A stretch of 54,359 nucleotides of DNA from Selaginella moellendorffii (taxonomy: Eukaryota > Plantae > Lycopodiophyta), in NCBI RefSeq assembly GCF_000143415.4, contig NW_003314294.1, forward strand, positions 1 to 54,359, written 5' to 3'. The position numbers and the translations under genes were made by a program. Under the pieces are notes generated by a model, which worked only from the letters and a program-made list of their open reading frames with translations, did no database searches and was not told where the DNA came from. Positions 1,860 through 54,359 of the stretch are shown here, piece by piece (positions within the stretch are counted from its first letter, which is position 1; each line of letters opens with the position of its first letter).

Positions 1860-2784
1860 ATAGAGGTCACACACAACTTTATGTCAAGTTGTTTTCTTCT
1901 AGGAACACCTTTTCCTATAACTTTAGCATGGCACATTTTGCCATCGATGAGATACTCTCTGTTCTCATCCTTGGATCCTATGATCCCCCCCCATCCTTTG
2001 TGGGGTACAACGCACCTCAGTCCAAATGCTTCATTCAGTCCTTTTTAGGACCATCCCTTGACTCTACTTGAGTCGTCTAGCAGTTTTGGACTTGGTTAAT
2101 CCACCGACCCGTAAGGTCCTACTTGTGAGGCACTAGCTCACTGGAATACACATCTTGCATTCCGGTCCTACTCAAAAGGACTATTTTCACAAGTGTTACT
2201 CCGACACTTGATTTTGTTCTCTGGGGGCAACCTTTGCCCCTTAGGACTACTTGTCCATGTGATGAGAATACCAACTCATCCACTTAATACACCCCCAACT
2301 CCTTGGGTTGTTCCAGCATTTATTAGAGGTAGCCCCGGCTACCATTTCAAGGACTTGAGTCCTCTTCCGTATTTGACCTTCCACGGTCATTACCTTTGGT
2401 CTCACATTCATGAGCACCAACCTCAACTATATGAGGATAATCTTGTGACTCCTTTATTGTTTTGGAGTCTCTATCTTTCCCGTGATCCCAACTTTAGTTG
2501 TTTACCACAACAACCTAAGCCAATTTGCTGAGACAAATGCTCATCCGGATCACATCCTCAACTCAATGAGGAAAACCTTGCACTGTTCCCAAGATCCCAA
2601 AGTCGTTCCATTATTGGCCCTTTTCTATCCACCACCTCGTCTACAAGTTCACACATGAACTGTAATGGAGAGCCATGTCTTCCCGACTTGCTACTCCTCA
2701 AGGATAGGCCCACTCCTCGGACCTTCCGATGCCAACACTAGTGGTGATATACTTGAGCACCCATAAAAGTCGGACTAAGGAACA

Positions 2785-2796
2785 GCTCTGATACCA
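2785..2796 (-). promoter_or_regulatory. Primer binding site (tRNA-iMet type), TGGTATCAGAGC
   Basis: + strand gctctgatacca, 3 nt from the LTR end at 2800; canonical plant retrotransposon PBS. Confidence 0.93.
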
Positions 2797-2799
2797 AAT

Positions 2800-4469: not shown

Positions 4470-4582
4470 ACTGGCTTCTTTTAGTAGATCTTGAGTTTCT
4501 TTAGGTTATACACATCTTCGTTATATATTGTCTTGCCCTTTCTTGTACAGTCTTCCTCCCACAACTAAATATGTTATTGTCC

Positions 4583-5085
4583 TCAAAACAAATTGCTTAT
4601 AGTGATTAGAGGTGGAGAATCGACTTGGCATTCTTGCTGTTGTGAGGTAGTAGTAAATATCATCCATGTTGATGATGTGTGGATGTGAAGTATATTGGAG
4701 TCAGAATTGTCATCCATGTTGTATTTCGGTTGTTTGCAGGTTGTAATGTGGCTGAGATGGTCAACTTGTTCATGTTGTTTGCCATGCTTATGAATAATCT
4801 CGAAGTGGTATTCTTGAAGTAATAAGAACCATCGAGCAATTCTACTGGTGATGGTTTTGTTAAGGAGGTGTAAAAGTGCTTTATAGTTGACCATGATCTT
4901 GACTTTGGTGCCGAGTAGGTAGTGTCAAAATTTTTGTAGTGCATAGACCATTCCTAAGGCTTCTTTTTTGGTGGTGGTGTAGTTCATCTCAACTAAGTTG
5001 AGTCTTCACCTAGCATAGTAGATTGGTCAATCTTTGAGGTTTTGTTATTGTTGAGAAAGTATTGCTCTAATGGCATAATAGGAGG
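4583..5085 (-). pseudogene. Decayed Ty3/gypsy pol fragment (RNase H region)
   Basis: Minus-strand translation gives NYTTTKKEALGMVYALQKF*HYLLG...IARWFLLLQEYHFEIIHKHGKQHEQVDHLS, typical of gypsy RNase H, with stops. Confidence 0.8.
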
Positions 5086-5992
5086 CTTGGGATTTAGAGG
5101 GTCCCATAATCAAGCCTTATTGTACCAAGGGATGTTAGGAATCTAAAGGCTTGGTGTGCTTTGCTACTTGTGCCTGTGGGGATTGTAACCGAACCTTAAG
5201 TCTAGTCTAACTCAAGGAGAGGGATTGGGAGAAATTGGGAATTTGTGAATGGATGGCTAACACTTTGTTGCTCGTGCAGTGAGTAGCTGAAACTAAGTAG
5301 GACCAAGTAAGAGCTGGTACAATAGGTGGGAACCTTGGCGAGATAACTTAGCTAAAGCCATGGCAGTGTTGGTTGGATAAATGAGGTAAGCTAGCAAATT
5401 GGAAAGGAAAAATTTGTGGCTTACAATTTGGTATTAGAGCTTTTTCCTTTGTTCTAGCAAAGGATAAAGGCAGATTGCTGGGAGATGGCAAAGGTAGGGC
5501 ATAAACAAACCAAGGCAGAGATGGAACCTCCTCTAGAGTTGGAGCCTCCGATCAAACAAGAGGTTATGGATGAAGAATCTTTGCATGAAGAGGACTCCAG
5601 TGACTCCGGACTAATGGTGCAGTGGCTGGGTGAACCAAGGACTATAAAGTTTGTTCAAGGTAGCCAAAGCACTAATGAGGTACTTCAACAAGCAAGAGTC
5701 AAAGTTGGGACATGGAAAGTAGACATAGATTTGACCATGTTGGACATAGCGGGATTTGATGTAATCTTCAGGATGGATTGGTTCAATTAGTTCTTAGTAG
5801 CCCTACATAGATAATGTAGGAACCTTGTGGTACTAGCAAATACGCAGGGAGAACAATCTAGGATGGAGACCCAAAATCTAAAGGTAGGGCAATTTAAGGC
5901 TAAAGACTCCTACTTGAACTTAATATCCATAAGAGGACAATTTACTAAAGGCACCAAAGCAGCATTTTTGTACTTACTCTCGGTGAGGAGTG

Positions 5993-7695
5993 TGTGAGAC
6001 ACAAAATCCCTAGGCCCCAAAGTGGAGCCGGAAAGGGTGCCACGTGGTAGTGGCTGAAGCGAGAGCCAAACGAGCGTAACACGTTTGGACCAAAAGCTCC
6101 AACTTGAAAAGTCAAGAGCGGGAGTGGAACTCCCAAAGAAGTGCTCGAGGAACGAGCACGAAGCGAGCAAAAAGTGAGGCTCCAAAAAGGGACTCAAAAG
6201 GACCAACACATGACACGTGGAAGTGTCCGAGATGGACTCGAGTTGGAGTCCAAAGTGGAGTCCGAGATGGACTCGAGTTGGAGTCCGAAGTGGAGTCCGA
6301 AATGGACCCGAGTTGGAGTCCGAAGTGGAGTCCGAGATGGACCCGAGTTGGAGTCCGAAGTGGAGTCCGAGATGGACCCGAGATGGAGTCCGAGGTGGAC
6401 CCGAGATGGACCCGAAATGGAATCCAAGATGGAGTCCGAGATGGAGTTCGAAGTGGAGTCCGAAGTCGAGACCGAGACCAGGACCGAGACCAAGACCGAG
6501 ACCGAGACCGAGATCGGGACCGAGAACGAGACCGAGGCCGAGGCCGAGACCGAGACCGAGGCCGAGGCCGAGACCGAGCCCGAGCCCGAGTCCGAGTCCG
6601 AGTCCGAGTCCGAGTCCGAGTCCGAGTCCGAGTCCGAGTCCGAGTCCGAGTCCGAGTCCGAGTCCGAGTCCGAGTCCGAGTCCGAGTTCGAGTCTGAAAG
6701 GGTGAAAGCCCAAAGCGTTCGTCTCCCAGACCCTGGGGGGTTTAGTGAGCTCCAAAAGTATAGTAGAGGGGGAGGACTGCAATGGAGCCAGTTTGGCCAG
6801 GAAAGGCCAGTTTGGCCCAGGAAGGCCAGACCCAGTGTTGGGTGATGAACTGACCACTGGGAAGTCCAAGACTAGAGTGAATACGGACCGACAAGCGGGG
6901 TAGCTTGGTGAAGTGTTCAAGAGCCGGCTCTAGTTCCCCCGGGAGATCGACTGGGCGATGCTCCCAGTCCAAGTGTGGGTGGCACTACCTACTTGGATAC
7001 CAGGTGTGGCTAATTGGAACCTCGCTCTAAGCCCATGGCTAGAGCACCTAAATGCGAAAGGTGGGGAGAGTACCCAGGTGGCTCGCGTAAGGCCACGGTG
7101 TTCCGAAATGTTGTCCCAAAGGCCTAGACTGTGGAAAGGAAGAGGAGCAGTCCTCTGGGGTAGTGACCAAGGACACAGTCGGGTGGTGAGGAAGTCCCAG
7201 AGGACCATAGGACTTAGGGGTCGAGCCTGTGGGCCTTGATCCAGTGGCAGTGTTGGCAAACACGGCCAGGGGCAGAAAGGGACTTGGTAGGAACTGACAA
7301 AGGGACTTTGGGGAAGGCATTTCCCCAGGGCTGTGGGCATCCTAAGGATGCTAAGGAGTGGATCTAGGATGACCACTCGTGGATAGATGGCCCAGTCTTG
7401 GAGAGACGGGTTTGTGATGCAAGTGGTATTGGACCACTAGTGCAGCAAGGGTAAATGGGCATGGCCTTAGCGTAACGGGCCGAGATGTCAGTGGTACCTT
7501 TGGGTGTCGGTCTTGGGACCGGACACGAGGAGCACTTGGACCAGATGTAAGTGTTGAGTGGCATGGATGCCATACTCGGGGCTAGCAAGTCCCAAGTCCT
7601 GAATTGGACTGATGGAGGTTGTGAATGAGACTCCTCCAAGTGGTCGGAGGTGTGGTTAAGTGACTAAAGTAGAATGGAAAATTTAGTCGCCTACA
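5993..7695 (+). mobile_element. Solo LTR (LTR 2, 1703 bp) of the copy A/B family with 5-bp TSD GAGTG
   Basis: TGTGAGAC...CGCCTACA, flanked by GAGTG at 5988-5992 and 7696-7700; no PBS or internal region adjacent. Confidence 0.93.
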
Positions 7696-22602: not shown

Positions 22603-24386
22603 CTAATTAATGGTTTCTACAAGACTGTTTAGTTGTTCCGTGAAATCAATTTGATCAAGCTGCTCCTTGGCCCGGTGGCTATCTCCATGTGTCTTGTAAG
22701 CACCCAGCAGCGTTCTCATTGCGACATCATCAGCCTCTACCGGCATGCCTTGGATCAATTCCTCGGCGTCTCTCAGCTGGCCAGCTCGAGCAAGCAGATC
22801 GATCATGCACATAAAATGGTCACGAACCGGCTGGATCCCGAAGTCTAGCTGCATGGACACGAAGAAGGAGCAGCCATCTTCGTATCGCCCCCCATGGCTG
22901 CAAGAGAAGATGACGCTCACGAACGTGATCTCGTCCGGATCAACACCTCGCAAGACCATCGCTACAAACAGCTCCAGCGCCTCCCAGAAGCAGCCGTTTT
23001 TGGAGTACGAAGCCATCATCGTGTTCCAAGCGACGAGGTGGTTTGGAGCCGGGATTTGCTCGAACACCGCTCGCGATTCCTCCAGGTTCCCACACTTCGC
23101 ATAGAGATTCATGAGAGCGTTCCCGACAACGATGTCCCGATCCAATCCGGCCTCCACAACCGCGGCGTGGATCATCCGTCCCTCCACGATCGAAGGAATG
23201 CTCGCACAGGCGTCCAGCACGCCCACGTAGCTGAACTTATCGGGATGGAAGCCCTCCACCACCATTCTCTTGAAGAGTTTGAGCGATTCGACATGGCCAC
23301 CCTCGCCAGAGCTCGAAGAAGCGTACATCGCGATCATGATGTTCCACGAGTTGAGATCCCGCGTGATCATGGCATCGAACATCTCCCTGGCTTTGGAGAG
23401 GCGCCTGTTCTGCGTGTAAGCCGTGACCATCGCATTCCACGACACAGTGTTCTTTACGGGCATGTCTTGGAACACGGCCTCAGCATCTGCAAGATGCCCG
23501 TTCTGGGCATACGCAGCAACCATCGCCGTCCACGTCACTACATTCTTCTCGGGCATCTCCTGAAAGACTTGAAACGCTTCTTGGGCACTTCCACACTTCC
23601 CATACATGTCTACGAGCGCGGTCCCCAGCACGACGTCGCAATTGTAGTCTTCCCCGGAAGCGACGATCGTGGAGTGGATGATCTTCGCTACTGCAATTCC
23701 CGCAGGCGCATCTAGAGCTTGGATCACACTCAGATATGATACCTTGTCCGGCTCAACTCCCTGGAAATCCATCTCTCGAAACAGCTCCAGCGCCTCTTGC
23801 ATAAGCCCATTCTGGGCAAATGCTGCTACCATCGCGTTCCAGGCCACCACGTCTCGAACTGGCATATGGCGAAACAATGATCTTGCGTCGTCGAGGTTGC
23901 AGCTTTGCGCGCAAGCAACCAAAATCGCCGTCCAGGAAATGGCGTCCCAAAGAGGCATCTTCCTGAACAGCGTATGTGCCTTCTGCAAATGCCCATTCTG
24001 GGCAAATGCGGAGATCATCGTGTTGAGCGAGTAGATGTTGGGTGTCTCGATGCGCTCGAACGCGGCGATGGCGTCGCCGAGTCTCCCACACTTTCCGTAC
24101 ATCTGGACGAGGTTGTTTCCCAGATACGTATCGCGGTCGTAGCCGGCGAGCGCGATCCGTTCGTGGAGCCGGCGACCCTCTCCCAGTGCCTTGGCGCTGG
24201 CGCACCGCCGGAGGAGAGATCCAAATCTTCCCACATCGATCGCGTTCTTTCCAGAGTCGCGGAGGAGGAGCCCATCGATCGCCTGCTTGAGCTGCTCGCG
24301 CAAACTCTTGTCGCTTAATCTGGGCGATGCTGCTGCTGCTGCTGCTGGATGCTCGTCGTCGCAGCTTAAGTTCTTGCCCACCACTT
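22603..24386 (-). pseudogene. PLS-class PPR gene, 5'-truncated duplicate of 26442-28298
   Basis: Near-identical to the downstream copy, but homology stops at ~24386, removing the ATG and the first ~29 codons. The ORF track starts it at a GTG. Frame otherwise open. Confidence 0.7.
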
Positions 24387-26441: not shown

Positions 26442-28298
26442 TCACTCTACAAGACTGTTTAGTTGTTCCGTGAAATCAATTTGATCAAGCCCCTCCTTGG
26501 CCCGGTGGCTATCTCCATGTGTCTTGTAAGCACCCAGCAGCGTTCTCATTGCGACATCATCAGCCTCTACCGGCATGCCTTGGATCAATTCCTCGGCGTC
26601 TCTCAGCTGGCCAGCTCGAGCAAGCAGATCGATCATGCACATAAAATGGTCACGAACCGGCTGGATCCCGAAGTCTAGCTGCATGGACACGAAGAAGGAG
26701 CAGCCATCTTCGTATCGCCCCCCATGGCTGCAAGAGAAGATGACGCTCACGAACGTGATCTCGTCCGGATCAACACCTCGCAAGATCATCGCCACGAACA
26801 GCTCCAGCGCCTCCCAGAAGCAGCCGTTTTTGGAGTACGAAGCCATCATCGTGTTCCAAGCGACGAGGTGGTTTGGAGCCGGGATTTGCTCGAACACCGC
26901 TCGCGATTCCTCCAGGTTCCCACACTTCGCATAGAGATTCATGAGAGCGTTCCCGACAACGATGTCCCGATCCAATCCGGCCTCCACAACCGCGGCGTGG
27001 ATCATCCGTCCCTCCACGATCGATGGAATGCTCGCACAGGCGTCCAGCACGCCCACGTAGCTGAACTTATCGGGATGGAAGCCCTCCACCACCATTCTCT
27101 TGAAGAGTTTGAGCGATTCGACATGGCCACCCTCGCCAGAGCTCGAAGAAGCGTACATCGCGATCATGATGTTCCACGAGTTGAGATCCCGAGTGTTCAT
27201 GGCATCGAAGATCTCCCTGGCTTTGGAGAGGCGCCTGTTCTGTGCGTAAGCCGTGATCATCGCATTCCACGACACGGTGTTCTTCACGGGCATGTCTTGG
27301 AACACGGCCTCAGCATCTGCAAGATGCCCGTTCTGGGCATACGCAGCAACCATCGCCGTCCATGTCACTACATTCTTCTCGGGCATCTCCTGGAAGACTT
27401 GAAACGCTTCTTGGGCACTTCCACACTTCCCATACATGTCTACCAGCGCGGTCCCCAAGACAACATCCGACTTGTAGTCTTCCCCGGAAGCGACGATTGT
27501 GGAGTGGATGATCTTCGCTACTGCAATTCCCGCAGGCGCATCTAGAGCTTGGATCACACTCAGATATGACACCTTGTCCGGCCCAACTCCCTGGAAATCC
27601 ATCTCTCGAAACAGCTCCAGCGCCTCTTGCATAAGCCCATTCTGGGCAAATGCTGCTACCATCGCGTTCCAGGCGACCACGTCTCGAACTGGCATTTGGC
27701 GAAACAACGATCTTGCATCGTCAAGGTTGCAGCTTTGCGCGCAAGCAACCAATATTGCCGTCCAGGAAATGGCGTCCCAAAGCGGCATCTTGCTGAACAG
27801 CGTGCGTGCATGATGCAAATGCCCGTTTTGGGCAAATGCGGAGATCATCGTGTTGAGCGAGTAGATGTTGGGTGTCTCGATGCGCTCGAACGCGGCGATG
27901 GCGTCGCCGAGTCTCCCACACTTTCCGTACATCTGGACGAGGTTGTTTCCCAGATACGTATCGCGGTCGTAGCCGGCGAGCGCGATCCGTTCGTGGAGCC
28001 GGCGACCCTCTCCCAGTGCCTTGGCGCTGGCGCACCGCCGGAGGAGAGACCCAAATCTTCCCACATCAATCGCGTTCTTTCCAGAGTCGCGGAGGAGGAG
28101 CCCATCGATCGCCTGCTTGAGCTGCTCGCGCAAACTCTTGCCGCTTAATCTGGGCGATGCTGCTGCTGCTGCTGGTGGATGCTCGTCGTCGCAGCTTAAG
28201 TTCTTGCCCACCACTTGCCTTCTCACGAAATGGGCGTCAAGGATCGCTCTAGCTGGGGACAAGCACGAAAATCTTCTTCGCTGGGAAAGAGCTTGCAT
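26442..28298 (-). CDS. PLS-class pentatricopeptide repeat protein ending in a truncated E region (no DYW), 618 aa
   Basis: Repeated MYGKCG and VVAWNAMVAAFAQNG motifs; Arg/Ser-rich N-terminus consistent with an organellar transit peptide; intronless. Confidence 0.9.
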   Translation of the reverse strand: MQALSQRRRFSCLSPARAILDAHFVRRQVVGKNLSCDDEHPPAAAAASPRLSGKSLREQLKQAIDGLLLRDSGKNAIDVGRFGSLLRRCASAKALGEGRRLHERIALAGYDRDTYLGNNLVQMYGKCGRLGDAIAAFERIETPNIYSLNTMISAFAQNGHLHHARTLFSKMPLWDAISWTAILVACAQSCNLDDARSLFRQMPVRDVVAWNAMVAAFAQNGLMQEALELFREMDFQGVGPDKVSYLSVIQALDAPAGIAVAKIIHSTIVASGEDYKSDVVLGTALVDMYGKCGSAQEAFQVFQEMPEKNVVTWTAMVAAYAQNGHLADAEAVFQDMPVKNTVSWNAMITAYAQNRRLSKAREIFDAMNTRDLNSWNIMIAMYASSSSGEGGHVESLKLFKRMVVEGFHPDKFSYVGVLDACASIPSIVEGRMIHAAVVEAGLDRDIVVGNALMNLYAKCGNLEESRAVFEQIPAPNHLVAWNTMMASYSKNGCFWEALELFVAMILRGVDPDEITFVSVIFSCSHGGRYEDGCSFFVSMQLDFGIQPVRDHFMCMIDLLARAGQLRDAEELIQGMPVEADDVAMRTLLGAYKTHGDSHRAKEGLDQIDFTEQLNSLVE

Positions 28299-30218: not shown

Positions 30219-33200
30219 ATGGCGAGCGCCTTGCAAACAAGCTGCCGTATTCTCGGAAGAGCACACGCCCGTCGCGCGAATATTCCACGTTCTTGTAGAG
30301 CTATATTCTTCGCTACTAGGCTTGGGTCCTCCGTGAGCGCCTATACTCCAGCGCTTCCACCGAGGTCTAGGGTTCCTCATTTGTGTTGCTCCGCCGGGAC
30401 GAGGAGAATGGCGGCGCTGGCAATCGACAAGGAGCTAAATCCTCTCCTCAAGGATGGATCGTTGCCTCTCTACGACAAGGTCGATGCAACGCACGTCGTC
30501 CCCGGGATCCGGCAGCTGCTGGAAGAACTGGTAATATTTCTCTGGATTCCACGATTGTCTTGACTTGATCGCGCAGGAAGCGGAGCTTGTCAAGCTGGAG
30601 CAAAATCTCAAGCCTGATTGGGAATCCCTTGTTCATCCCCTGGAGCGCATCACGGATCGATTGACTGTGACGTGGGGAATCGTTGAGCACCTGAAGGCTG
30701 TCAAGGATAGTTCCGAGCTACGCGCGGCTGTCGAAGAAGTACAGGTATCTCTTTCTTTGATCTTCTTTGCAAAAAAGCTATTCTTGCTGTCTTTCTGTAG
30801 CCCGAGAAAGTGGCTTTTTTGCTGAGACTCGGCCAGAGCAAACCTCTCTATAAAGCTTTCAAGGAGATTCAAGACGGACCAGGATTTAAGAATCTCACGG
30901 ACGCTCAGAAGAGAATTGTGGAAGGTAAAATGCTAGCTTTTCTCCTGTTTTTCATCGATGCTTGCTTGTGAAACCTGCAGCTCAGTTGAAGGAGGCCACG
31001 CTTAATGGTGTAGCGCTAGAAGGAGAGGACAAGAAACGATTCAACGAGATTGAACAGGTATTTTGTTCTTCTCATAGGCGTTTGCTGATGGTGTATGTGG
31101 TGGCAGGAATTGGAACTTCTTGGGACGAAGTTTAGCGAGCATGTTTTGGACTCGACCAAGAAGTATCAAAAGTTAGTCGTAGATAAAGCTGATATTGAAG
31201 GACTGCCACCCACTGCTCTTGGTTTGGCTGCACAGACGGCATGCTCAAAGGTAAAGTTGCGACTTAATCACAACTCGGGACTTATTGTTCTCTTTTGTAA
31301 GGGTCACGAGGGTGCTAACGCAGAAAACGGACCATGGATGTTTACGCTAGACCTGCCTAGCTACATGCCCGTGATGAAATTTGCAAAGAATCGAGCTTTG
31401 CGGGAAGAGATGTATCGGGAATTTATCACTGTTGCCTCTGAAGGTGACCTGGACAATACTCCTGTGATCAACAAAATTCTGGAACTCCGCTTGGAGAAAG
31501 CGAAGCTACTTGGCTACAAGAATTTTGCCGAGGTACTTTTTAGCGTCGAGCTTACAATCTGAGCAAAAACGCGTCTTTACAGGTCAGTATGGCTATGAAA
31601 ATGGCAACAACAGAAACTGCTAATGAGCTCTTAGAAAAACTTCGTCTCAGCTCATGGGATGGTGCTCTTAAAGGTGCTTCAACTATTATTGTTTCCTTGG
31701 TTCAAACAATTTTTGTTTCTTCTCCTTTTTTTCAGATTTTGAGGAACTAAAGTCCTTTAGTAAGTCCAAAAATGCACCAGAAGCTGATGATCTTTCTCAC
31801 TGGGATCTAACTTATTGGAGCGAACGCTTGCGTGAAGACAGATACGATGTTAATGAGGTAAATTGTATTCTAGATTTTCTTATATATGATTCGGAGGTCT
31901 ACATTGTGTAGGAAGAACTGCGGCCTTACTTTTCGTTGCCAAAAGTAATGGATGGGCTGTTCAACCTTGCCAAATATCTTTTTGGCGTTCAGATTGAACC
32001 TGCAGACGGCATGGCACCTGTACGTTTGTCAGCGTGTTTGTTGTTTCGCTTTAACTTGTTCTCTTTTTTCTTTTTGTGTTTTTTTTCTTTTGTTTTGTTT
32101 TTGCTAACAGGTCTGGAACAAGGACGTGAGCTTTTTTCAAGTGAAAGACTTGGCTGGTGAGCCTTTAGCTTTCTTTTACTTCGATCCTTATTCGAGGCCC
32201 TCGGAAAAGCGGGGTGGTGCTTGGATGGATATTGTGGTGGGACGGAGCCGTGTCCTTGCACCCCGAGGCAGCTCTGTGCGCTTACCTGTTGCTCACATGG
32301 TTTGCAACCAAACGCCTCCTGTTGGAAACGAGCCTAGTCTAATGACATTCCGGGAGGTACGATTTAAAACGTATTTCACTATTTCAACTTTCTTTGTAGG
32401 TGGAAACTGTGTTCCATGAATTCGGGCATGCGTTACAGCACATGCTCACTAAACAAGACGAAGGTTTAGTCGCAGGAATCCATGGTGTTGAATGGGATGC
32501 TGTGGAGCTTCCTTCTCAATTCATGGAGAATTGGTGTTACGATAGGTTTGTTGATATTTATTTAAAAGTTTGTTTCTAATCATGCAAACTACAGGAAAAC
32601 TCTCATGAGCTTTGCCGTCCACTATAAAACGGGTGAGCCATTATCAGAGGATGTGTACGAGAAGCTCAAGGCCGCAAGGACGTTCCGGGCTGCATCTTTG
32701 ATGATGCGTCAAGTAAGTATTTGCTTAAAAGCTCAGCTGACGCTGGTTTGGTTTTTGCTTTGCAGCTCCACTTTGCGATGACTGATCTGGAGCTCCATGG
32801 AAGATTCAAAGTCGGTGGCTCGGAAACAGTGTATGATGTCAACAGGAGAGTGGCAGAGAAAACTCAAGTCTTGCCCCCCCTTCCGGAAGACAGGTTCCTT
32901 TGCAGCTTTCTCCATATATTCTCATGTAAGTGCCTTTGTTGTCTTGCATTATCCCTTGCTCATCTTTCTGAATGCCTTCTTGCAGCGGCATCATATGCAG
33001 CTGGATACTACAGCTACAAAGTAAGTTCTTGTAGAGTATAAAGTTTTGACTTTCTCTTATCGTTTCTTACCTTTGATTCATGCAGTGGGCAGAAGTTCTT
33101 TCTGCTGATGCTTTCGGGGCATTTGAAGAAGCTGGACTGGACAATGAAAACGTGAGTTTCTCAAAGTTACTGAGGATTTACTAACGCCTTATGTGCGTGC

Positions 33201-33405
33201 AGGCGATCAAGGAGACTGGAAGGCGATTCAGAGACACAGTTCTCGGGCTTGGAGGAGGCAAACCTCCTCTCGAGGTAAATTCACCCAACAAAAAGTTCTC
33301 CTTCCAACTTGTCCATCTATCCAGGTTTTCAAGAGCTTTCGCGGCAGAGAACCTTCCACTGAAGCGTTGTTGCGGCATAGTGGTCTATTGGCTGTGGCAT
33401 CATAG
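30219..33405 (+). CDS. OOP: Organellar oligopeptidase A (M3 zinc peptidase, OOP/TOP-like), ~17 exons; alternative in-frame ATG at 30183
   Basis: NPLL..., [36 protein letters not shown] (HEXXH) at ~32415-32441, [47 protein letters not shown]; transit-peptide-like N-terminus. Confidence 0.93.
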
Positions 33406-33466: not shown

Positions 33467-35449
33467 ATGAGCAGTCAAGACCCAAGAGTAAGAGAGCTCT
33501 ACAGGATTGAGCAAGGGGATATAGACTTGAGTGACCACTCCTATGGGCTTCTCATCAAGAACTTCACCTCTCCCCCCCACTCACTCTCCCTCGCCAAGCG
33601 CCTCCACGCCCAGATCTCCAGGCGCGGCCGCGACCACAACACATTCCTCGGCAACTTGGTTGTGGACATGTATGCCAAGCTCGGCAGCCTCGAGGAGGCG
33701 AGCTCGGCGTTCCAGAGAATCCAGCAGAGGAATGTTTTCTCCTGGAACATCCTCCTCGCAGCACATAGCGCGAATGGGGATCTTGCTACGGCAAAGAAGC
33801 TCTTCGACAAGATGCCCGTGAGAGATACCGTGTCATGGAGCTCCATGGTGGGAGCGTTTGCACAGCACGAGCTTTGCGACGAGGCTGTTTCGTTGTTTCG
33901 AGAGATGCAGCTGGAAGGATCCAAGCCGGACAGGATAACTTTCATCAATGTGATCGATGCCTGTGCCGAGAAGCCGGCTCTCCAAGATGGAAAGTTCGTC
34001 TACAGCGTTTTGGCCGAAGATGGATTGGATTCCGACGTGAAAGTTGGCACCGCGCTGCTTAACATGTATGGGAAGTGTGGAAGTTTGCGGGACGCGGAGG
34101 CTTTGTTTGAGAAAATGCCGGAGAGGAACGCTGTCTCTTGGAACGCACTTCTTTCAGCATATGCCCAGAACGGGCATATGGAAAGTGCGAGGGAAGTGTT
34201 TGGGAGTATGCCTGAGAGGAATGTGGTGTCGTGGACGGGGATGATGGCCGGGTATGTCCAGAACGAGCTTTGTAAGGATGCGCTGGAGCTCTTTCTCTGG
34301 ATGGAGAACGATGGCGTGAAGCCCAACGAGAACACTTTCATCGCTCTTCTCGATGCCTGCGCGAGCATGTCAGCTCTTTCGCAAGGGAGAGTTCTCCACG
34401 CTCGAGTCACTGCGGTGGGATTTGATTCCAAGCTCAAGGTTGGGACTTGTGTTCTTGAGATGTATGGCAAGTGTGGTAGATTGGAAGAGGCGAGAGCGGT
34501 GTTTGACAAGATGGTGAACAAGAGTGTGATCACCTGGAACGCGATGATCGGATCGTACTCCCGGTTTGGACACTGGAGAGAAGCTCTGCGGGTGTTCTTG
34601 GCTATGGCACAGGAAGGAGTGACGCCAACTTGGATAACTTACATCAGCGTTTTGGTCGCGTGTAGCCACTCGGGGCTCTTGAGCCAAGGGAAGGACTACT
34701 TCACTTCTATGAGGCGGGACTTTTGCATCGATCCAACAATCGAGCATTACCACTGCATGATCGATCTCGTTGGCCGGGCGGGAACTCTTGCCGATGCTGA
34801 AGAACTCATCCACAACATGCCGTTTCACTCGGACTCAGTGACTTGGGCGGAGCTCGTTGCTTCTTCTCGGATTCATGGAGACTTGCTAAAGTGTGAGCGT
34901 GCTGCCGAGAATACATTCGAGATCGATCCAAGGGACCCTGCTCACGTCATTCTGTCCAACATGTATGCTGCGGCTGGAAAGCCGGCCTTGGTGAGAAAGG
35001 TGCGAAGAGACATGAAGGAGAGAGGGGTGAAGAGTAGGCCTGGGTGTAGTTTTATAGAGATTGGCAACAAAGTTCACGAGTTTGTATCGGGTGACTCGAT
35101 CCATCCCTTGAACGAGGAGATCCGGGCTAAAACTCGGGAGCTTCACGAGCGGATCAAACAGGAGCTTGGGTACGTGCCAGACACGAAGGAGGTGCTTTAC
35201 GACGTAGATGAGGAGGTGAAAAAGAAGATGCTGAGTTTCCACAGCGAGAAAATGGCTATTGCTTTTGGTGTTCTTGTGACAAGAGCCGGCACACCGCTGA
35301 GGGTCGTGAAGAACCTTAGAGTGTGCATGGATTGTCACACTTTTACCAAGCTGGTCTCCAAGTGCCTTGGAAGAGAGATTATCATGAGGGATGTCAATCG
35401 GTTCCACTCGTTCAAAGGGGGTGTGTGCTCATGTGGAGACTACTGGTGA
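33467..35449 (+). CDS. PLS-E-DYW PPR protein (putative C-to-U RNA editing factor), 660 aa
   Basis: PLS repeats, PG box PGCSFIE, HSEK...CMDCH zinc motif, terminal DYW; intronless. Confidence 0.95.
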   Translation: MSSQDPRVRELYRIEQGDIDLSDHSYGLLIKNFTSPPHSLSLAKRLHAQISRRGRDHNTFLGNLVVDMYAKLGSLEEASSAFQRIQQRNVFSWNILLAAHSANGDLATAKKLFDKMPVRDTVSWSSMVGAFAQHELCDEAVSLFREMQLEGSKPDRITFINVIDACAEKPALQDGKFVYSVLAEDGLDSDVKVGTALLNMYGKCGSLRDAEALFEKMPERNAVSWNALLSAYAQNGHMESAREVFGSMPERNVVSWTGMMAGYVQNELCKDALELFLWMENDGVKPNENTFIALLDACASMSALSQGRVLHARVTAVGFDSKLKVGTCVLEMYGKCGRLEEARAVFDKMVNKSVITWNAMIGSYSRFGHWREALRVFLAMAQEGVTPTWITYISVLVACSHSGLLSQGKDYFTSMRRDFCIDPTIEHYHCMIDLVGRAGTLADAEELIHNMPFHSDSVTWAELVASSRIHGDLLKCERAAENTFEIDPRDPAHVILSNMYAAAGKPALVRKVRRDMKERGVKSRPGCSFIEIGNKVHEFVSGDSIHPLNEEIRAKTRELHERIKQELGYVPDTKEVLYDVDEEVKKKMLSFHSEKMAIAFGVLVTRAGTPLRVVKNLRVCMDCHTFTKLVSKCLGREIIMRDVNRFHSFKGGVCSCGDYW

Positions 35450-45006: not shown

Positions 45007-48000
45007 GTCAAAGCTAACTTTGAAGGACATGTAACATATAAAATTCAAATTTTTTATCAAGCATTGTTTAATTGCTTTTAGATGGGCACCACAAGATCTA
45101 AAATAGGTTATACATACATACATTATTATTCTTGATAATGTTATTCAAATCTAGAGATGAATTGGTTTTACAATCTACAATTGTACCACATCTTGCAAGT
45201 GATTTTACTTTAAGGTTGTGTGAAGTATCTATTTCTACCTTTAACAACTGTTATCGAAACTAGCACCTCACTTTTTGTGTTTCCTATGCAATTGTGTTAA
45301 ATGGTTCACATACTACATCAAATAAAAACCTTTTGCTTTAGTCATAAGCATCAAGGTAAATATCAAGAAGTTAAAAGTATCAATATTGCATGTAATAGAA
45401 ACCCTTTACTTTTGTTTATGAGCAACATAACTATCAAAAAGTCTATAAGTATTAATAAAATTAGGGGTAACCTAGATTTATTAAGAGTATATTCACCAAT
45501 AATGACCACAGTGGAAATTGAACCTTAAATCTTTACTCATGGGATTTGAATTCAACATATATCATGCACATGGATGGGTATATAAAATTAACATATGAAT
45601 CTAGGATAGATGTGAAAATTCTTCATCCAAATGAAACTTTTACTACTTCTTGGCAATCTAAAGGTAATTCCTCAACAACCAAGACTAATACCAACATCTT
45701 TTTCTATTTCTTGTTGGATGATCTTATGCATACTTATAGGGCTAGGACAATGGGGATCTGTTAGCAAGTGAATTACAAGAGGTCACTCATCCAAAAGGAT
45801 CAAAATTTTAAGTGATTTCCTTAATATTGATATGATTTTGTGTAGGACCACAATTGGATATGTTAATTAGGAGCCTAGTTACTCAATGTGTTATAACAAG
45901 GCAACCAAGATTTGGAGATGAGAATGCCAAACGTTGGAAATTTTTCTTTAGTGTTTTTACTACTAAGTGATCTTGAGGCTAGTCTTGAACTCCTGATGGA
46001 AGAGTTCTGGTGGGAGTGCAAATGTGATGGTGAATAGTTCGACAAGAATGATTGCCACTCCTTGGAAAATGAAGGTGGTGATATTTAAAGCTTAATGTGA
46101 AGTGGCTGCATAACAAAAAAATTGTAATTGCAATTTAACAAACTCTTATTTTGAAAACAAAATCAATAAAAATGAATTAATTTTTTTTATTGAATTCAGG
46201 AAAAAAAACCATATAAAAACCATGAATTTTTAATTGGTATATAGGTGGATACTAATAAGATCTCACATAGAATTAGGATCCTCAACTTACACTCACTCAA
46301 ATGCACTTTTATGCTTTGCACTTAACTAAAATAATCATTTCCTTGCCATTGTGAGTGTCAAGGATGATCATAAGGATTTACTTGATAAAAAGCAAATATC
46401 TTAGTTTTTTTGTTGTTTTAAGCTTGAGAACTTTAAATAACAAAAAGACAAAAGATTTCATAGAAACCCCTACATATGTATACTTTCTATATTAGGAAAA
46501 AGAAGACTTTAATCTCAAGGTTGCACCCAAGCAAGTACAAACTGTGCATGCAAATTTTCAGCACTTGATCTTATGGAGCATGATTCTTTCTTTTAGGAAC
46601 AAAAATATAAAGCTACAAAAATATCAATGAAAAATGTGTTTATGTTAGTGAAACAATGTTGTAATGCTCCTCACTCCTCACAATATAATCATTGCAATAA
46701 TCATGAAGCTCAAGCCAAGAAGCAAAAACCCAATTTTTTTTTTTATATTGTCACTTTGTAACATGCATGAGTGTAACAAACTGTTACAGTGCCAAAAACT
46801 TGTGTGCATAATTAAAAATGCAAAAAGTTGATAGAACTAACCACACAATTCATTTACGCTCAAAAAAGCTATCACTCAATGCCCCAAGCACTAAAAAAAA
46901 GGCTTTGTGCTTGCCTTCACACTTCAATCAATCACTACCTAATTTAGGATGTTATACTACAAATAAACTATAAAAAATGAGAGGCACTCTTAAGAGTGAT
47001 TGAAGCACTATAACTACATTAGGGTGTGTTGTGATTTGAATGTGTTTTATTTCTCCTGGCTTGATTGTAAAACTATAAAAATGAAAGGTGAATGTAACAT
47101 GCCAAAAGTATGAGAGAAATGGTTACAATCAGAAAATCATAAATCTGCATTCAATGATATTAAAATGAGACAAAAAAATCCTTCCTAAATTTGTAATGAT
47201 ATCATGTTATCTGAGATGATGTGGCATTATTTTTGTATGGTAGTTTGAGGTGTTATGCCCCAATCTCATGACAAAACAATCAAAATGTGATTGTGTGTAT
47301 AATACTTTTGCATAGAACTCAAAACAAAAAATATATATCCACACATGTGTAAATATATAATGTTCCAGTCTGCAATTATATATTCATTGCCATAGGTAAT
47401 AAAAAATGCAAAAAAATTATCACATATGTAAATATAAAATAAAACCATATACAATCACATTTTGTTTGCCAAAGGTGTGAACCACTTCTTATTAAATTAC
47501 ATATGCATTTTCTATGTAGTGTATGCTAATAGTTGATAAGAATCCACCCTACCATTGCCACTGCTATAATCATTATTGCTGTTACTTGGTGTGCAAGTAA
47601 CGCAAACATTGGTGAAAATCCAATGCCCTGCAAAGGAAAGACTCTAAGAAAGGACCACCATAATCTTCTTATCCCATATAATAGTTTTTTATGTTGTGAA
47701 TATTCTTTGTAGCTTAAATGTGTTTCTAAACGTCATATACCACAAACAATGTGACAATCACATTAAACATGATTGTCACCAATTTAATATTAAAATATAA
47801 AATATAGCCACATTTGCCTGCCATAGATTGCACAGTGTCTTTAATTTGTCTTATTAGTTTTTTGTGAAAGGAAAAAGCAGAAAATGATTAAGTATCCATT
47901 TATTGTCTTGAGTTCTTGTTTCTATTTGTTTCAAGTATTTCTGAACTTGTATAACTGTTGACATTTACCTTTGATGCTTGTGATGAAAGCAAAAGGGTTT

Positions 48001-49440
48001 CTAGTTGATGCAATATGTCAACCGTTTAAATATAAATTTCCAGGGCTCTCTAGGAATTTGCATCCAAGTGATTGCTCAAGCTGTTGGAGCTCAAGAAGAG
48101 CTTGGGATCGAGATGAGGGCGTGCCGATTGCATTGCCAAGCCGCTTTTTTGCTTGTTGGGGCGAGATTTCTTTGTCGCACTCCTTTTCTTTTTTTCCCTC
48201 TCGCAGTACCATGTGTAGGTGGCAAGTGCCTTATGCCCGCCTCATGCAATATGCATAAGCAGTGATCAAGAAGTTGTAAATCCATCTTTTCCTTCATCGT
48301 TTAAAACTAGAAAAAATCTCGTTTTTCACATATGGAGCAGTGGGACAAATGCACCAAGTTAGTTGAATTTCTACAAATTTTCTTTTAATTTAGTTCATGT
48401 CTCGCATTTAGAGGTCTCAGGCTCAACTAGCTCAAATGCTTTAGGTGCCCCTGTAGCTCCTCGGGCCACGGGAATCTCTGCCAAGTTCTCATTGGGTGAC
48501 AACAAAAGGGTGGTAATCTCCTCAAACTCGTACAATTGCGTGGCTCAACGTCGGCGATCAAGGTCGCGGGTGATGCCCTGGCGATTGTGATGCAAAACAA
48601 GGTGTAGCTTCACAAGAAAAGCTTCCACTTAGAGGCAGCCGAAGAGTTTGAAGTTCTAGAAGAATCCGGGATGTTTAGCTTGAATACGTGAATCGTGCAT
48701 TGTGTCACTGGTGAGCGCCAGCAAGAGAACATGCCATGCTCCAAATATCAGCTTAATCCTTCCCTCTTCAAAGCTGGAAAACGCAGCAAGAGAAGAAGAC
48801 ATTTGTTTCTTACCTCAAACTTTTCCCCCAAAATCCTCATGATCGTCCTTGACACTCGCAGTGGCAAGGAAACGACCATTCTGGCTAAGCGCTAAGCACG
48901 AAAGTGTGTTTGAGTGAGCGTAGGTCTAGAAGGGATGCCCGCGAGCAACATGAACACAAAGGAATCGCGAGAATATCCAGGACACTCCTCGAAGTTTACA
49001 AGTGGTGACGGATTTCCTCGCCGTCTCGTTTGCCCAGACATAAACACATCACAAAATAAAGCTCACAATAAAATCTATGATGTTATGAATGTATGACATT
49101 CTTTTGGTTGTGGATTTTTCTTATGCTTTGGAGAGCAAGCTTGAGAATGTGATGAAGGAGAAGTTTTATATCACTCAGAGTATTGCGGCTGTTAAGGAGC
49201 AACTCCAGATACATGAAATAGTTGACTATAGAAACTTCGACGTGGTGTGGCTGGTGGAAAAACTAGAGAAACAATGTGGCCATGCAGATTTTGTCACCAT
49301 TACTGTTCAATCTTGTGCTTTTAGTTGGGTGCCTTCCAGCTTGTTAGGAAAAGTGTGGAACAACGATGCAATATTTGTCACTATAGTTCGATTTTTCATT
49401 CATGAGAATATTCCACGACTGTCGATTATTTCAAAGGGCT

Positions 49441-51903
49441 CTACCAGTAGTCTCCACAAGAACACGCACCATTCTCAAAGTGGTGGAAGCGTATAGCATC
49501 ACGAACAACGATCTTCCTCCCCACAACCTTGGAGATGGCCTTGACGGCTGCATGGCAATCAAAGCACACGCGGAGGTTCTTGACAATGTGGAGCGCCGTT
49601 CCTGGCGGAGTGGAGATCAGCCCAAACGCGATCGCCAGCCTCTCACTGTGGTACCAAAGCAGCTGCTCCTTCTCCTCCTCCTCCACGTCCCGAAGAACAG
49701 CCCTCACGTCAGCGACATAGCCCGCCTCCTTGACTCGCGCCTTGAGCCTCTCGATCTCTGCGTGAATCCTCCCGAGCTGCGGGTGGAGCTTCTGCGCCGC
49801 CATGAACTCGTGGACGCGATCCTTCACTTCGATGCTGCTCAATCCCGGCTGCTTGGTTATCCCCCTGAGTCTCATCGCCTTCCTCGTTCTCCTGGCCTCG
49901 TCCATCCTCCCGGTCGAGGAGTAGAGGTTTGAGAGCAGTATGTAAGGCCCCGAGTCCTCTGGATCCAGCTCGTAGATAAGCTCCGCGATGCGAGCCCCTC
50001 GATCGACGTCTCCGTGCATCCTACATGCGCCTAGGAGAGCTAGCCATGCCGAGGAGTCGGGCTCGTATGGCATGCTGTTGATGAGATCTTCGCTGAGCTG
50101 CAACTGGCCGGACCTTCCCAGGAGATCGATCAAGTTGAGGTAGTGCTCAAATACCGGCACCACTCCAAAGTCGCGTATCATCGAGACGAAGTAGTCCACC
50201 CCGTCCATGGAGCGACCGGCGTGGCTGCATGCGAAGAGGAGGCCGAGAAAGGTGATGCCGTTCACTTCCAGGGCGCCTTGAACCATCTCGTGGTAGAGCT
50301 CGATAGCCTCCGTCTCGTAGCCGTTCTGTGCGTAAGCAGCGAGTATGGCGGACCAAGTCACGGTGTTTTTCTTTCCCAGGCTGTCGAAGATGGCTCTTGC
50401 GTTATCCAGTCGCCCGCATTTGCCATAGAAGTGCATGACCGCCGTGCCGAGAGCCACGTCCATGGGAATCCCGCTTGCGGTAATGTCGTCGTGGACCATC
50501 CGGCCTTCCGTGTGTGCTGCTAGAGCCGCGCAAGCGTCGATGATGGTGAGGAACGTCACTGCGTCTGGCTGAACCCCCTCCAAGTCCATGGATCTAAACA
50601 CCTGGATGGCCTTCTTGCACTGCCAGTTTTGAGAGTAGACTGCAACCATGTTGTTCCAAGTCACCAAGTTCTTCCGAGGTAGACTGTCGAACACGGCCCT
50701 GGCAGCGTCCACGTTTTTACACTTCCCAAACATGTTGACGAGCGACGTCCCCACCATGATATCGGACTCGAGCCTCTTGTCCACAGCTATAGCATGGACG
50801 ATCCGGCCTTCTTCTTCGGATGGAAGACTGGCACAGGCGTCGATTGCGTTGATCAGAGTGACTTGGTTCGCTATCACACCCTCTAAGTCCATGGTCTTGA
50901 AGAGGTGGAGAGCTTCCTTGCCTAGACCGTTTTGCGTGTAAGCTCCAATGATGCCGTTCCAGGAGATCACGTCCCTGTTCTCCATTCTGTCGAAAAGTAC
51001 CCGAGCTTCGTTCATGTTTCCATCCTGAGCGTATGCCACCACCATCATGTTCCACGTTGCAGTGTTGCGCTGAGGCATGTCGTCAAAGAGTTGTCTTGCT
51101 TCCACCAGGCGACCGTTTTGAGTGTAGGCCGTGACCAAAGATGTCCAGGAAATCACGTCCCTCCTGGTCATCGTATCGAATGCCTGCTTCGCCTTGCCCA
51201 AGCAGCCACACTTGCCATAGAGGTTGATGATGGCGTTGCCGACGTCCACATCTAGATGCAAGCCGTGGAAAACTGCCCTGGCATGATACGTCTTTCCAAG
51301 AACCAAGTTCCGGATGTTCGAGCAGGAGTTTAAGATGCAGACGAAAGTGATCCGGTTTGGAGAGACGCCTTCTTGATCCATCATGCAAACCAACCTGATA
51401 ACTTCGTTTCCTGGCGAGCCCGTGATGATGGTGTTCCATGAAGCAACGTCCCTTGCCGGCATTTCATCGAAGAGAAGCCTCGCTTTGTGTTGATAACCAT
51501 ACTGGCAATATGCTGTGATCATCGTGTTCCAGGACACTGTGTTCCGATCCGGGTTCCGACCAAAGATTTCTTCTGCCTCTTCCAGACGACCGTTGCGGAT
51601 GAAGACCGTCATCATGATGTTCCAGGAAAACGCGTTCTTTTCCTGAATCTGGTCGAACACTGACCTCGCCTCTGCAATGCCCCCACACTTGCCATACATC
51701 TCGATAAGCAGATTCGCGATGAGTCTGTCACTGGCATATCCATCCTTGACAAGGCAAGAATGGACCCGCTTGCCCTCCAGCAGGGCCTTCGAGTCGGCGC
51801 ATTTCTTGAGAAGCAAGACGTAAGTCGAGATTTCTTCTCGCCGCTCATCAACTGTCCTCCTGTTACCATTTGCAACTGACCACCCCGCAGTAGCGACGTC
51901 CAT
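49441..51903 (-). CDS. PLS-E-DYW PPR protein (putative C-to-U RNA editing factor), 820 aa
   Basis: Long PLS array, PGLSSIE, HSERLA...CFDCH, terminal DYW; intronless. Confidence 0.95.
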   Translation of the reverse strand: MDVATAGWSVANGNRRTVDERREEISTYVLLLKKCADSKALLEGKRVHSCLVKDGYASDRLIANLLIEMYGKCGGIAEARSVFDQIQEKNAFSWNIMMTVFIRNGRLEEAEEIFGRNPDRNTVSWNTMITAYCQYGYQHKARLLFDEMPARDVASWNTIITGSPGNEVIRLVCMMDQEGVSPNRITFVCILNSCSNIRNLVLGKTYHARAVFHGLHLDVDVGNAIINLYGKCGCLGKAKQAFDTMTRRDVISWTSLVTAYTQNGRLVEARQLFDDMPQRNTATWNMMVVAYAQDGNMNEARVLFDRMENRDVISWNGIIGAYTQNGLGKEALHLFKTMDLEGVIANQVTLINAIDACASLPSEEEGRIVHAIAVDKRLESDIMVGTSLVNMFGKCKNVDAARAVFDSLPRKNLVTWNNMVAVYSQNWQCKKAIQVFRSMDLEGVQPDAVTFLTIIDACAALAAHTEGRMVHDDITASGIPMDVALGTAVMHFYGKCGRLDNARAIFDSLGKKNTVTWSAILAAYAQNGYETEAIELYHEMVQGALEVNGITFLGLLFACSHAGRSMDGVDYFVSMIRDFGVVPVFEHYLNLIDLLGRSGQLQLSEDLINSMPYEPDSSAWLALLGACRMHGDVDRGARIAELIYELDPEDSGPYILLSNLYSSTGRMDEARRTRKAMRLRGITKQPGLSSIEVKDRVHEFMAAQKLHPQLGRIHAEIERLKARVKEAGYVADVRAVLRDVEEEEKEQLLWYHSERLAIAFGLISTPPGTALHIVKNLRVCFDCHAAVKAISKVVGRKIVVRDAIRFHHFENGACSCGDYW

Positions 51904-54359
51904 CTAATCGTCGTCATCTGTGATTGTGAAGGCCCTTCTTTTGGCTGGCTTCGGTATGGCTTCAGCTTCGGTACCTGCTAAATCCTCCAAGTCCATCATG
52001 TCCTGGCTAGCGTCGTCAGCAGTTTGGTGTTTCACCAGTCTTTTCTTTCTGTTTACAGGGTGCCCTGGAGGAACATCGAGCCTGAAAGAAGCGCTAGGAA
52101 GTTGGCGTCTTGATAAATTGGCAAGTTACAACTTACACTTCCTGAAGGTCCACTTCCGCATCGGATGGCAACCTGTTTTCCTCCACGTAGTCAGCGTTGT
52201 TAGCAGCAGGTAGTGTTCTGTTCTCTGTATCTCCCTTCTCAAGGTCACCTTCATCGTCATCTTCTTCTGATTCAGTCCACTCCTGATTGTCTTCAGAACT
52301 CTCACCGTCCTCCCTGCAAACGTCATGAGAAATCTATAAATCCATCAAGGTTTTGAACTGACCATTCATTCAAAGGCTGGACGCCGTCGTGATTGCCCTT
52401 ATCTAACTCGTCGTCCTCCATATCGTCATTCCTGTGACAAATGTTTTGCAGCTTCTGAGTGTGATGGTAAAAGGCTTTACCTGTCGGCGTCAATTGGACT
52501 TGTTCCATCAGCGTGAATGTGAGATGGTGTAGTCCCGTTACGATGTAGACCGAGCTGTTTTAGCTTTCTTGTTACTTGCGCACTGGATATCTTCCCATCG
52601 CTATCCAATGCTCCTGCAATCAGTTTGGAGCAGCTACGCTTGTGCTTAAACCTGAAACAAAACATCCTCCAGGTGTTAAAGAAAATTAAGGTAAAGTCTT
52701 ACTGTTGGAAAAGCTCAATAATGCGCTTTTCATCTTCCTCATTGAAAGGACCCCTTCTGCGTTTCTTGGGCACAGGTACTGTTCTATGAGCAACTCCTCG
52801 TTCGCCAATAATACTAAGAAGAGGAAAGTCAAGGAACGAACCTAAGTATAGGAAAATGTACCTCGTGGATTCAGAAGCCAGGTTGACAAAACCATCATCA
52901 GCTTCTTCTTGAAGAGCGTCCGCAAGGCAAGTAATAGATGTATCCCCTTCGAACTCGTAATCATCGGCAATGTCACGGGATGATTCACGGCTTCTTGTAA
53001 ACAGCACATCCACGTAAAGCCAAGGATTCGACTTCAGTTTCTTGAAAAAGTTACGAACGACTTTGTTGATGAAGGAGATGAGGAATTTGTACTCTTCTAG
53101 TTTTTGAAGTTTTTCATCCAAAAGGATGGTTTCAAAGGTTTCAAGGATTGAAATCTGCAATATTCAGGCTTAAAACGAATCAATTCGGAAAACAAACTCG
53201 ACAGACCTCGTATAGCAAGGGCTCCAGCTCGCAATCTTTGCATATCCGGTGGAGCATACAAACGATGTAATAATTCAAGGCAGGGCTGTTGGACTGGTAG
53301 AATGTCAGGAGCCAGCAATAGTTGGAAACGGTTGTACTGTCTGCAAACGTATTAACGCATTTGAGGACGTTAAAAGTGCCTTCTCGCGTTGAAACATTAT
53401 CATGGTCGTCTTGGAGGTCGTCAAGCAGTGGCTCTGCTTGCGCCTGCTCCTTATCACCTCCCGCCTGCTCCTGATCACCCCCCGCCTGCTCCTGATCTCC
53501 TCGCAAAATGTCGTTATTTTCCTCTAGTGAAGCCTTCGACGCTTCAATACTCTCAGGTCCCGCATCTGATAAATCTTTAGAGTCATCCTGTTTTTTCCTG
53601 GATACTTTATTTCGAGCCTTTTGGACAACCTGCTCCAAAATACATCTCAAATTTGCGATATAGAGGCATTTATTTAACTTACTCTCAAAGCACCGTCTTC
53701 CTGGATTGTATTTTCCATCAGTTTCAATGCGACATGAGTAATTTCGACCATGTTCTCAAGATATCTACATGGACAAAAATATGCATTCTTTTAAAGTTTC
53801 AAATAAATTCCCTTTACCTCCGAGGTTGTTTGTAGTTGTTGAATGCCTTGATTGATCTACAGCATGTATTCAAGATGCCTCTTTCGGTCTGATCATAGAA
53901 AACCTTATAAGTAAGCGTCCTAGCAGTGCGAACATCACGATTGGAGAAATTTGACCGTTTCTTGAGCACTAAATCCAGAATATGAATCTAGAAAAGAGAA
54001 AACAGAAAAGAAAGAATAAGCCGACACTACGAGGGAACTAGGCTTACCATCTCTTTTAGCAGGGAAACAACCGCGACAACCGGGATCCAGTCATTAGGAG
54101 ATTTAGCAGCTTCCGTATAATCATGCCATTTTGATACAACCATCTGAAACGTCTCTTCATTCATTGTACATGAAACATGACCACAGACTGAATCTGATAA
54201 AGCACTTTCATCTGCCTGTCAAAGGTAGTAAGGAACAGAACTCAAGTAAAGACAACTTACAAGTGTTTTCAGAAGCTTATAGCGTTGATAGCTTAGAAAA
54301 AATTCAGCAACTTCATAAAAGGTAACAAAATCAGAAGTCTCAATCTCTCGCCGTTCTCT
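51904..54359 (-). CDS. TIM: TIMELESS-family protein, 3' exons (gene continues beyond the window)
   Basis: Spliced exons give NYCWLLTFYQSNSPALNYYIVCMLHRI..LEPLLYE/ISILETFETIL...NPWLYVDVLF, a Myb-like C-terminal segment (AQVTRKLKQLGL) and an acidic tail. The last exon 52081-51904 ends KRRAFTITDDDD*. Confidence 0.85.

Follow-up and report, generated by a model that had tools for sequence, protein, structure and literature searches.

A TIMELESS gene and a PPR-E-DYW gene joined stop to start without a spacer, and covered by continuous spliced RNA, in Selaginella moellendorffii

Neighboring genes that share one RNA are known from several kinds of system. In caliciviruses and influenza B, restarting of translation at a stop-start site depends on a termination upstream ribosome binding site (TURBS), in which an upstream UGGGA motif pairs with 18S ribosomal RNA. 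The polycistronic transcripts of green algae (Gallaher et al. 2021, PMC7896298), like the plant CDC26-TTM3 pair, have small upstream open reading frames (ORFs) with weak start contexts and rely on leaky scanning. The readthrough tandem genes of Arabidopsis (Kurihara et al. 2022, PMC9768141) are still separated by spacers of normal length and have poly(A) sites and promoters of their own, their readthrough forms being minor targets of nonsense-mediated decay (NMD). Retrogenes that use the transcription unit of a host gene form a further kind. In lycophytes, expansion of the pentatricopeptide repeat (PPR) family has been linked largely to retroposition (PMC13386178). The locus described here lies at the end of a 54,359-nucleotide (nt) stretch of the lycophyte Selaginella moellendorffii (contig NW_003314294.1 of assembly GCF_000143415.4, positions 1 to 54,359; "the window" below), where a TIMELESS gene and an intronless PPR-E-DYW gene, both on the minus strand, meet with no nucleotide between them and are covered by continuous RNA. 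Overlapping or readthrough tandem genes are a known class, of which this locus is an extreme case.

Direct reading of the minus strand across the joint gives ...ACA GAT GAC GAC GAT TAG ATG GAC GTC GCT..., in which the TIMELESS stop codon TAG (51906-51904) is followed at once by the PPR-E-DYW initiation codon ATG (51903-51901), for a spacer of 0 nt. The second haplotype, GL377570.1, has an identical joint (gattagatgg), and the public gene calls adjoin without a gap in both haplotypes (GL377598.1, that of the window, and GL377570.1), the last base of TIMELESS leading directly to the first base of PPR. Since it is retained in both haplotypes, the zero-spacer TAG-ATG is real and not an assembly slip. 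The abutment is already implicit in the public annotation; a literature search found no paper on the TIMELESS-PPR locus or on Selaginella bicistrons. The locus is very compact. A preliminary description of this DNA, made from its letters alone, had claimed that the stop directly abuts the start, that the two ORFs share a frame and that a TIMELESS 3' untranslated region (3'UTR) or a PPR 5'UTR could lie only within the coding sequence of the other gene, and had proposed a look at the junction in the other haplotype, which proves to carry the same TAG-ATG. The first and third claims hold as stated, and the second is true but uninformative, because a zero spacer forces the same frame. A single exact abutment is also not beyond chance, given that M1 is the sole in-frame ATG before the first conserved PPR motif (residue 28), with about 27 possible codon positions, and that 3,861 PPR genes have been reported in the S. 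moellendorffii genome (PMC13386178).

TIMELESS belongs to the TIMELESS/Tof1 family of the replication fork protection complex. The window contains the 3' two-thirds of the gene (51904..54359, minus strand), modeled as 11 exons: 54359-54261, 54215-54048, 53987-53818, 53764-53683, 53629-53207, 53154-52862, 52813-52703, 52651-52481, 52431-52363, 52313-52137 and 52081-51904. The ten GT..AG introns are 45-60 nt each, and a single frame stays open from the window edge at 54359 to the TAG. The 5' part lies outside the window, behind an assembly gap in the window haplotype; the upstream ORF has 640 codons within the window, and the public call on GL377570.1 is 1,049 amino acids (aa) long. On that haplotype, the TIMELESS start is 309 nt from a divergent neighbor (a divergent promoter). 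Precomputed matches to PF04821 (TIMELESS) and PF27570 are recorded for the public TIMELESS calls of both haplotypes. Protein searches were run exon by exon; single N-terminal exons of the other haplotype matched PF04821 at E values of 3.4e-11 and 2.1e-7, above the gathering score, while the window's own exons, which cover only the C-terminal two-thirds, gave no Pfam match one by one and the C-terminal exons gave no match in PDB. A profile-free homologue search with one TIMELESS exon against 1.84 billion representatives returned full-length land-plant TIMELESS proteins, those of Diphasiastrum, Manihot ("protein timeless homolog"), Acorus, Amborella, Phalaenopsis and Vanilla being among the ones named.

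In the product of the last TIMELESS exon (51904..52081, minus strand; 58 codons plus the stop), an acidic patch is followed by a basic cluster, a hydrophobic pair and a terminal acidic run, and the sequence ends in ...AKRRAFTITDDDD before the stop. Most C-termini of the land-plant TIMELESS proteins from this search are built likewise, of basic cluster, hydrophobic pair and acidic run, with ends such as ...RRKGFVIDEDD, ...RRKLRMVVDFDDDD and ...KRRHRLVIDDDDDE, and the Selaginella tail and the acidic patch preceding it align with these. Because the tail matches this conserved C-terminal end, the TIMELESS stop is ancestral, and the last exon is ancestral TIMELESS coding sequence. In the TIMELESS transcript of another plant, an ordinary AT-rich 3'UTR follows the stop, so the zero spacer is derived; no genomic context is on record for the Diphasiastrum TIMELESS. 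Of 1,941 TIMELESS exon positions, only 4 distinguish the two Selaginella haplotypes.

The downstream ORF (49441..51903, minus strand) is intronless and encodes 820 aa of the PLS class, with Pfam matches to PPR (E 2e-76), E_motif (2e-14) and DYW_deaminase (2e-43, residues 728-820). The catalytic DYW motifs are intact, the zinc signatures HxE and CxxCH being present as HSE and CFDCH, and so is the C-terminal CSCGDYW. The product is a complete PPR-E-DYW protein of the PLS class, the type to which organelle C-to-U editing factors belong. Its allele in the other haplotype (GL377570.1) is named XP_024525730.1 in RefSeq and has 819 aa. The two haplotypes differ by 14 synonymous against 6 non-synonymous codon changes, together with an indel of one codon; the resulting ratio of non-synonymous to synonymous polymorphism (pN/pS) of 0.12 (binomial P 8e-6) shows purifying selection. 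Variation is highest at the N-terminus, where codons 2-15 (51859..51900, minus strand) form a fast-evolving stretch with 3 single-nucleotide differences and one in-frame 3-nt indel; the first 15 codons hold 2 of the 6 replacements as well as the indel, and their per-base divergence is near the level of the non-coding 3' flank. In a homologue of 42% identity, residue 93 pairs with PPR residue 28, so that leaders of 92 and 27 residues stand before the first motif, the 27 including 4 basic and 5 acidic residues. The PPR N-terminus thus looks truncated, and the start at 51903 stands. Two other gene structures were considered and rejected: a downstream start, the next in-frame ATG being codon 69, within the first conserved motifs; and an upstream PPR exon joined at the TAG as acceptor, for which no joint was found in any run and no ORF in the other frames. 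An orthologue search in other species found no PPR orthologue or paralogue above 43% identity, and this lack of a close relative marks the gene as old.

Twenty public runs match the stretch wholly or partly, and four of them, from four studies (X1, X5, X6 and X7), were used, the RNA consisting of Logan assembled contigs labeled "RNA?" that were placed on 48800-54359. All ten TIMELESS introns are skipped exactly in contigs of the four runs, with CT..AC borders (GT..AG on the gene strand), and this exact removal identifies the runs as complementary DNA. The last intron (52082..52136, minus strand; 55 nt, GTAAGT...TTTCAG) is spliced in each, seen as the joint 52080>52136 with 145-177 nt on its shorter side; its retention would end the ORF at a TAA at the intron start. 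Single contigs of X5 (record 3, 49377-52640) and X6 (record 7, 49419-53154) carry spliced TIMELESS exons together with the complete PPR ORF, X1 record 2 covers 50951-52080 plus spliced exons past the window edge, and X7 record 11 crosses the TAG-ATG as well. Every 31-mer across the joint is covered by RNA, as is the whole PPR ORF by contigs in the four studies. The PPR gene is therefore expressed as RNA, and spliced RNA is continuous from the TIMELESS exons through the PPR ORF, this continuity being a property of contigs, which may merge overlapping transcripts, rather than of single molecules or 5' ends. X5 and X6 carry the second allele, which differs at 51875, 51883 and 51899, lacks 3 nt at 51855 and keeps the TAGATG intact. 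Another idea, that a PPR leader had supplied the last TIMELESS exon and that the TAA in the retained intron was the true end, was rejected on the splicing in four studies and the conserved tail. In X5, some contigs keep TIMELESS introns 8 (52432-52480) and 7 (52652-52702) on the minus strand, with introns 6, 9 and 10 spliced; retention of intron 8 leads to an early stop in the TIMELESS frame, and these contigs may represent partly spliced RNA or an alternative isoform linked to the PPR-containing contig.

The preliminary description had placed the 55-nt intron before the last TIMELESS exon, in agreement with all four runs, and had allowed for an unspliced intron or a silent PPR gene; the intron is removed in every run, and the RNA contigs show the PPR expressed. 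From the abutment it had drawn three possible mechanisms, namely termination-reinitiation on a bicistronic mRNA, stop readthrough into a fusion, and a PPR promoter hidden in TIMELESS exons. The premise and the continuous RNA lend this partial support, but the readthrough option is disfavored. Programmed readthrough of the UAG would produce a TIMELESS-PPR-DYW fusion that carries a deaminase on a nuclear fork protein, and the two ORFs do lie in one frame, separated by a single stop; frame sharing, however, follows from the zero spacer itself. Readthrough motifs known from plants and viruses have the form UAG-CAR-YYA, or a C at +4. The stop context here is UAG-A (UAG AUG GAC), with no motif of the CAR-YYA type after the UAG, and there is no hairpin downstream, the 201 nt around the joint having no special structure (fold z +1.16; 178 of 200 shuffles at least as stable). 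The TIMELESS tail also ends as in its orthologues, the first 15 PPR codons are the most variable between haplotypes, which fits a free N-terminus or leader and not a dually constrained linker, and there is no rationale for joining a nuclear fork protein to an organelle factor. Such a fusion is considered extremely improbable.

The explanation favored here, to which we would give about an even chance, is that TIMELESS and PPR-E-DYW, both of them conserved, are two separate functional genes, head to tail without a spacer, whose overlapping transcription units are 3'-coterminal. From the TIMELESS stop through the 2.46-kilobase (kb) PPR ORF, neither AATAAA nor ATTAAA nor any AT-rich stretch was found. 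The first AAUAAA-like hexamers after the TIMELESS stop come right past the PPR stop, in an AT-rich region that appears to be the common 3' end (49170..49440, minus strand; AATAAT at 49430, AATGAA at 49400, TATAAA at 49170), and the RNA contigs end shortly after the PPR stop, at 49434, 49419, 49377 and 49217. TIMELESS would have no terminator of its own, and its mRNA would run through PPR to this poly(A) region. The PPR protein would be made mainly from a shorter mRNA that starts, from a putative promoter, within the 3' exons or introns of TIMELESS. The leader of this mRNA would carry weak upstream AUGs and be weakly translated as a result, which would fit a low-abundance editing factor; candidates are an out-of-frame ATG (51915..51917, minus strand) 14 nt before the PPR ATG, which opens a 101-codon overlapping ORF (51612..51917), and in-frame ATGs at 51999 and 51996 (minus strand) in the last TIMELESS exon, whose 30-31-codon reading ends at the TAG. 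As for origin, a PPR copy has probably come to occupy the 3'UTR of TIMELESS and lost the 5' end that it once had.

Several points weigh against this explanation. The internal promoter is deduced solely from the implausibility of reinitiation after a long ORF, and the last TIMELESS exon has no evident TATA-like core element. Any leader starting upstream of 51917 includes the out-of-frame AUG that precedes the PPR AUG by 14 nt, and a TIMELESS mRNA with a 3'UTR of 2.5-2.7 kb should draw NMD, yet the contig depths of the TIMELESS exons are similar to those of the PPR region, contig depth being weak evidence. Since poly(A) signals in plants are degenerate, TIMELESS could also have a cryptic site of this kind within the PPR coding region. 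The retroposition scars that were sought in the flanks of the PPR, a target-site duplication and a poly(A) remnant, were both missing.

The same continuous RNA could instead be a functional bicistronic mRNA, with PPR-DYW made wholly or mostly from the TIMELESS-PPR transcript by UAG-AUG stop-start reinitiation, in which the ribosome or its 40S subunit would start again at the neighboring AUG, and with PPR translation shielding the mRNA from NMD. The zero spacer is retained in both haplotypes, poly(A) signals are absent between the two stops, and the PPR, with its truncated 5' end, has no promoter space outside TIMELESS, all of which would fit; so would the continuous RNA at similar depth over both genes, although heterozygous bubbles and 3' bias make contig depths unfit for ranking the two. 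Precedents can be cited in the translation of bicistronic nuclear mRNAs in green algae (PMC7896298) and the inducible reinitiation after a full-length ORF in yeast (PMC11952965). The algal mechanism of leaky scanning is impossible here, however, because the TIMELESS ORF exceeds 1,000 codons and has many AUGs. After a long ORF, reinitiation is as a rule negligible unless a TURBS-like element is present, and here there is no UGGGA in the last two TIMELESS exons, the nearest minus-strand TGGGA being at 52593-52597, two exons upstream; nor does the joint have any special structure. The context of the PPR AUG is weak, with U at -3 and G at +4, the contigs are no proof of single molecules, and in a compact genome that has thousands of PPR genes, chance should produce a few exact abutments. 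In the readthrough bicistronic mRNAs of Arabidopsis, moreover, the second ORF is rarely translated (PMC9768141). Taken together, these points make the bicistronic mRNA unlikely, though it ranks second among the explanations.

The contigs alone cannot separate a hidden promoter in TIMELESS from termination-reinitiation, and the former probably ranks higher because the upstream ORF exceeds 1,000 codons and has no UGGGA in its last two exons. A broader proposal, that PPR-DYW synthesis by UAG-AUG reinitiation is one case of a genome-wide expression of promoter-less PPR (retro)genes as downstream cistrons on unrelated hosts, is doubtful; to our knowledge, downstream-cistron expression on unrelated host genes is not known for land-plant nuclear genes.

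The features of the PPR ORF itself bear on a further explanation, in which it is a passenger in a long TIMELESS 3'UTR, a young and decaying retrocopy that is transcribed by readthrough and translated little or never. It has no promoter space of its own, its short leader (27 aa) with acidic residues is unlike a classical presequence, and close orthologues or paralogues are missing, the next match down having 43% identity or less. But both haplotypes have kept the 820-codon ORF intact, with the low pN/pS given above, and all of the catalytic DYW motifs have been kept; the lack of a close paralogue also indicates an old gene, and an untranslated ORF of such age would have decayed. A passenger is accordingly judged quite improbable, and the two overlapping functional genes are preferred.

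On the 3' side of the PPR gene, at 45100-49200, are some 4 kb of mostly AT-rich DNA (GC content about 0.30 at 46-48 kb), so space is not scarce on that side; the haplotypes differ there by about 11% including indels, as against 0.2-0.9% in genes. The window has four PPR genes in its 54 kb. A second intronless PPR-E-DYW gene, of 660 aa (33467..35449, plus strand), starts 61 nt after an M3-type oligopeptidase-like gene, which is multi-exon, on the plus strand, and has its HEFGH motif in an exon at about 32400-32579 and its TAG at 33403-33405. Two near-identical PPR ORFs without a DYW domain (22603-24384 and 26442-28298, minus strand; 593 and 618 aa) lie about 3.83 kb apart and resemble a recent tandem duplication. 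Between about 3000 and 16500, a repeat unit of about 5.9 kb appears about 3 times (motif positions 3296/9118/15042 and 3377/9199/15123); the long ORFs of this region, at 3575, 9344 and 15268, have no Pfam match, and its GC skew is strongly negative. At 2375-6001 of the corresponding locus on the other haplotype (GL377570.1), two convergent genes of 536 aa (plus strand) and 481 aa (minus strand) have their stops 88 nt apart.

Should the relation be one of simple overlap, the locus would offer a clean natural case of how far tandem genes can be compressed in a plant nuclear genome: a second gene would make up the entire 3'UTR of an essential replication gene and would have its promoter in coding exons. 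This is relevant to annotation, to the rules of NMD for long 3'UTRs and to the expression of promoter-less PPR copies during the expansion of the family in lycophytes. Operon-like translation of PPR from the TIMELESS mRNA is possible, and if PPR is translated from a bicistronic RNA, such a stop-start mode after long ORFs would be new in land plants.

Among the known systems, the Arabidopsis readthrough pairs resemble this locus in having two co-oriented nuclear genes on one continuous RNA, with a first stop that precedes a very long 3' region holding a second full ORF; they differ in that the Selaginella pair has no spacer and no visible TIMELESS terminator, and here the readthrough form may be the sole form of the TIMELESS mRNA. 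With the green-algal polycistrons and CDC26-TTM3 it shares a tandem arrangement of unrelated proteins, a very short distance between ORFs and assembled RNA across both, but its upstream member is a replisome gene of 1,000-plus codons, to which leaky scanning cannot apply. The calicivirus and influenza B sites likewise have adjacent stop and start codons after a long upstream ORF; in Selaginella, the last two exons are without UGGGA and no structure is enriched at the joint. Finally, the PPR gene is like retrogenes that use a host transcription unit, being intronless, from a family linked to retroposition (PMC13386178), placed where an unrelated gene would have its 3'UTR, and without a 5' region of its own any longer; it differs from them in having neither poly(A) remnant nor target-site duplication, and its origin by retroposition would be read from these likenesses.

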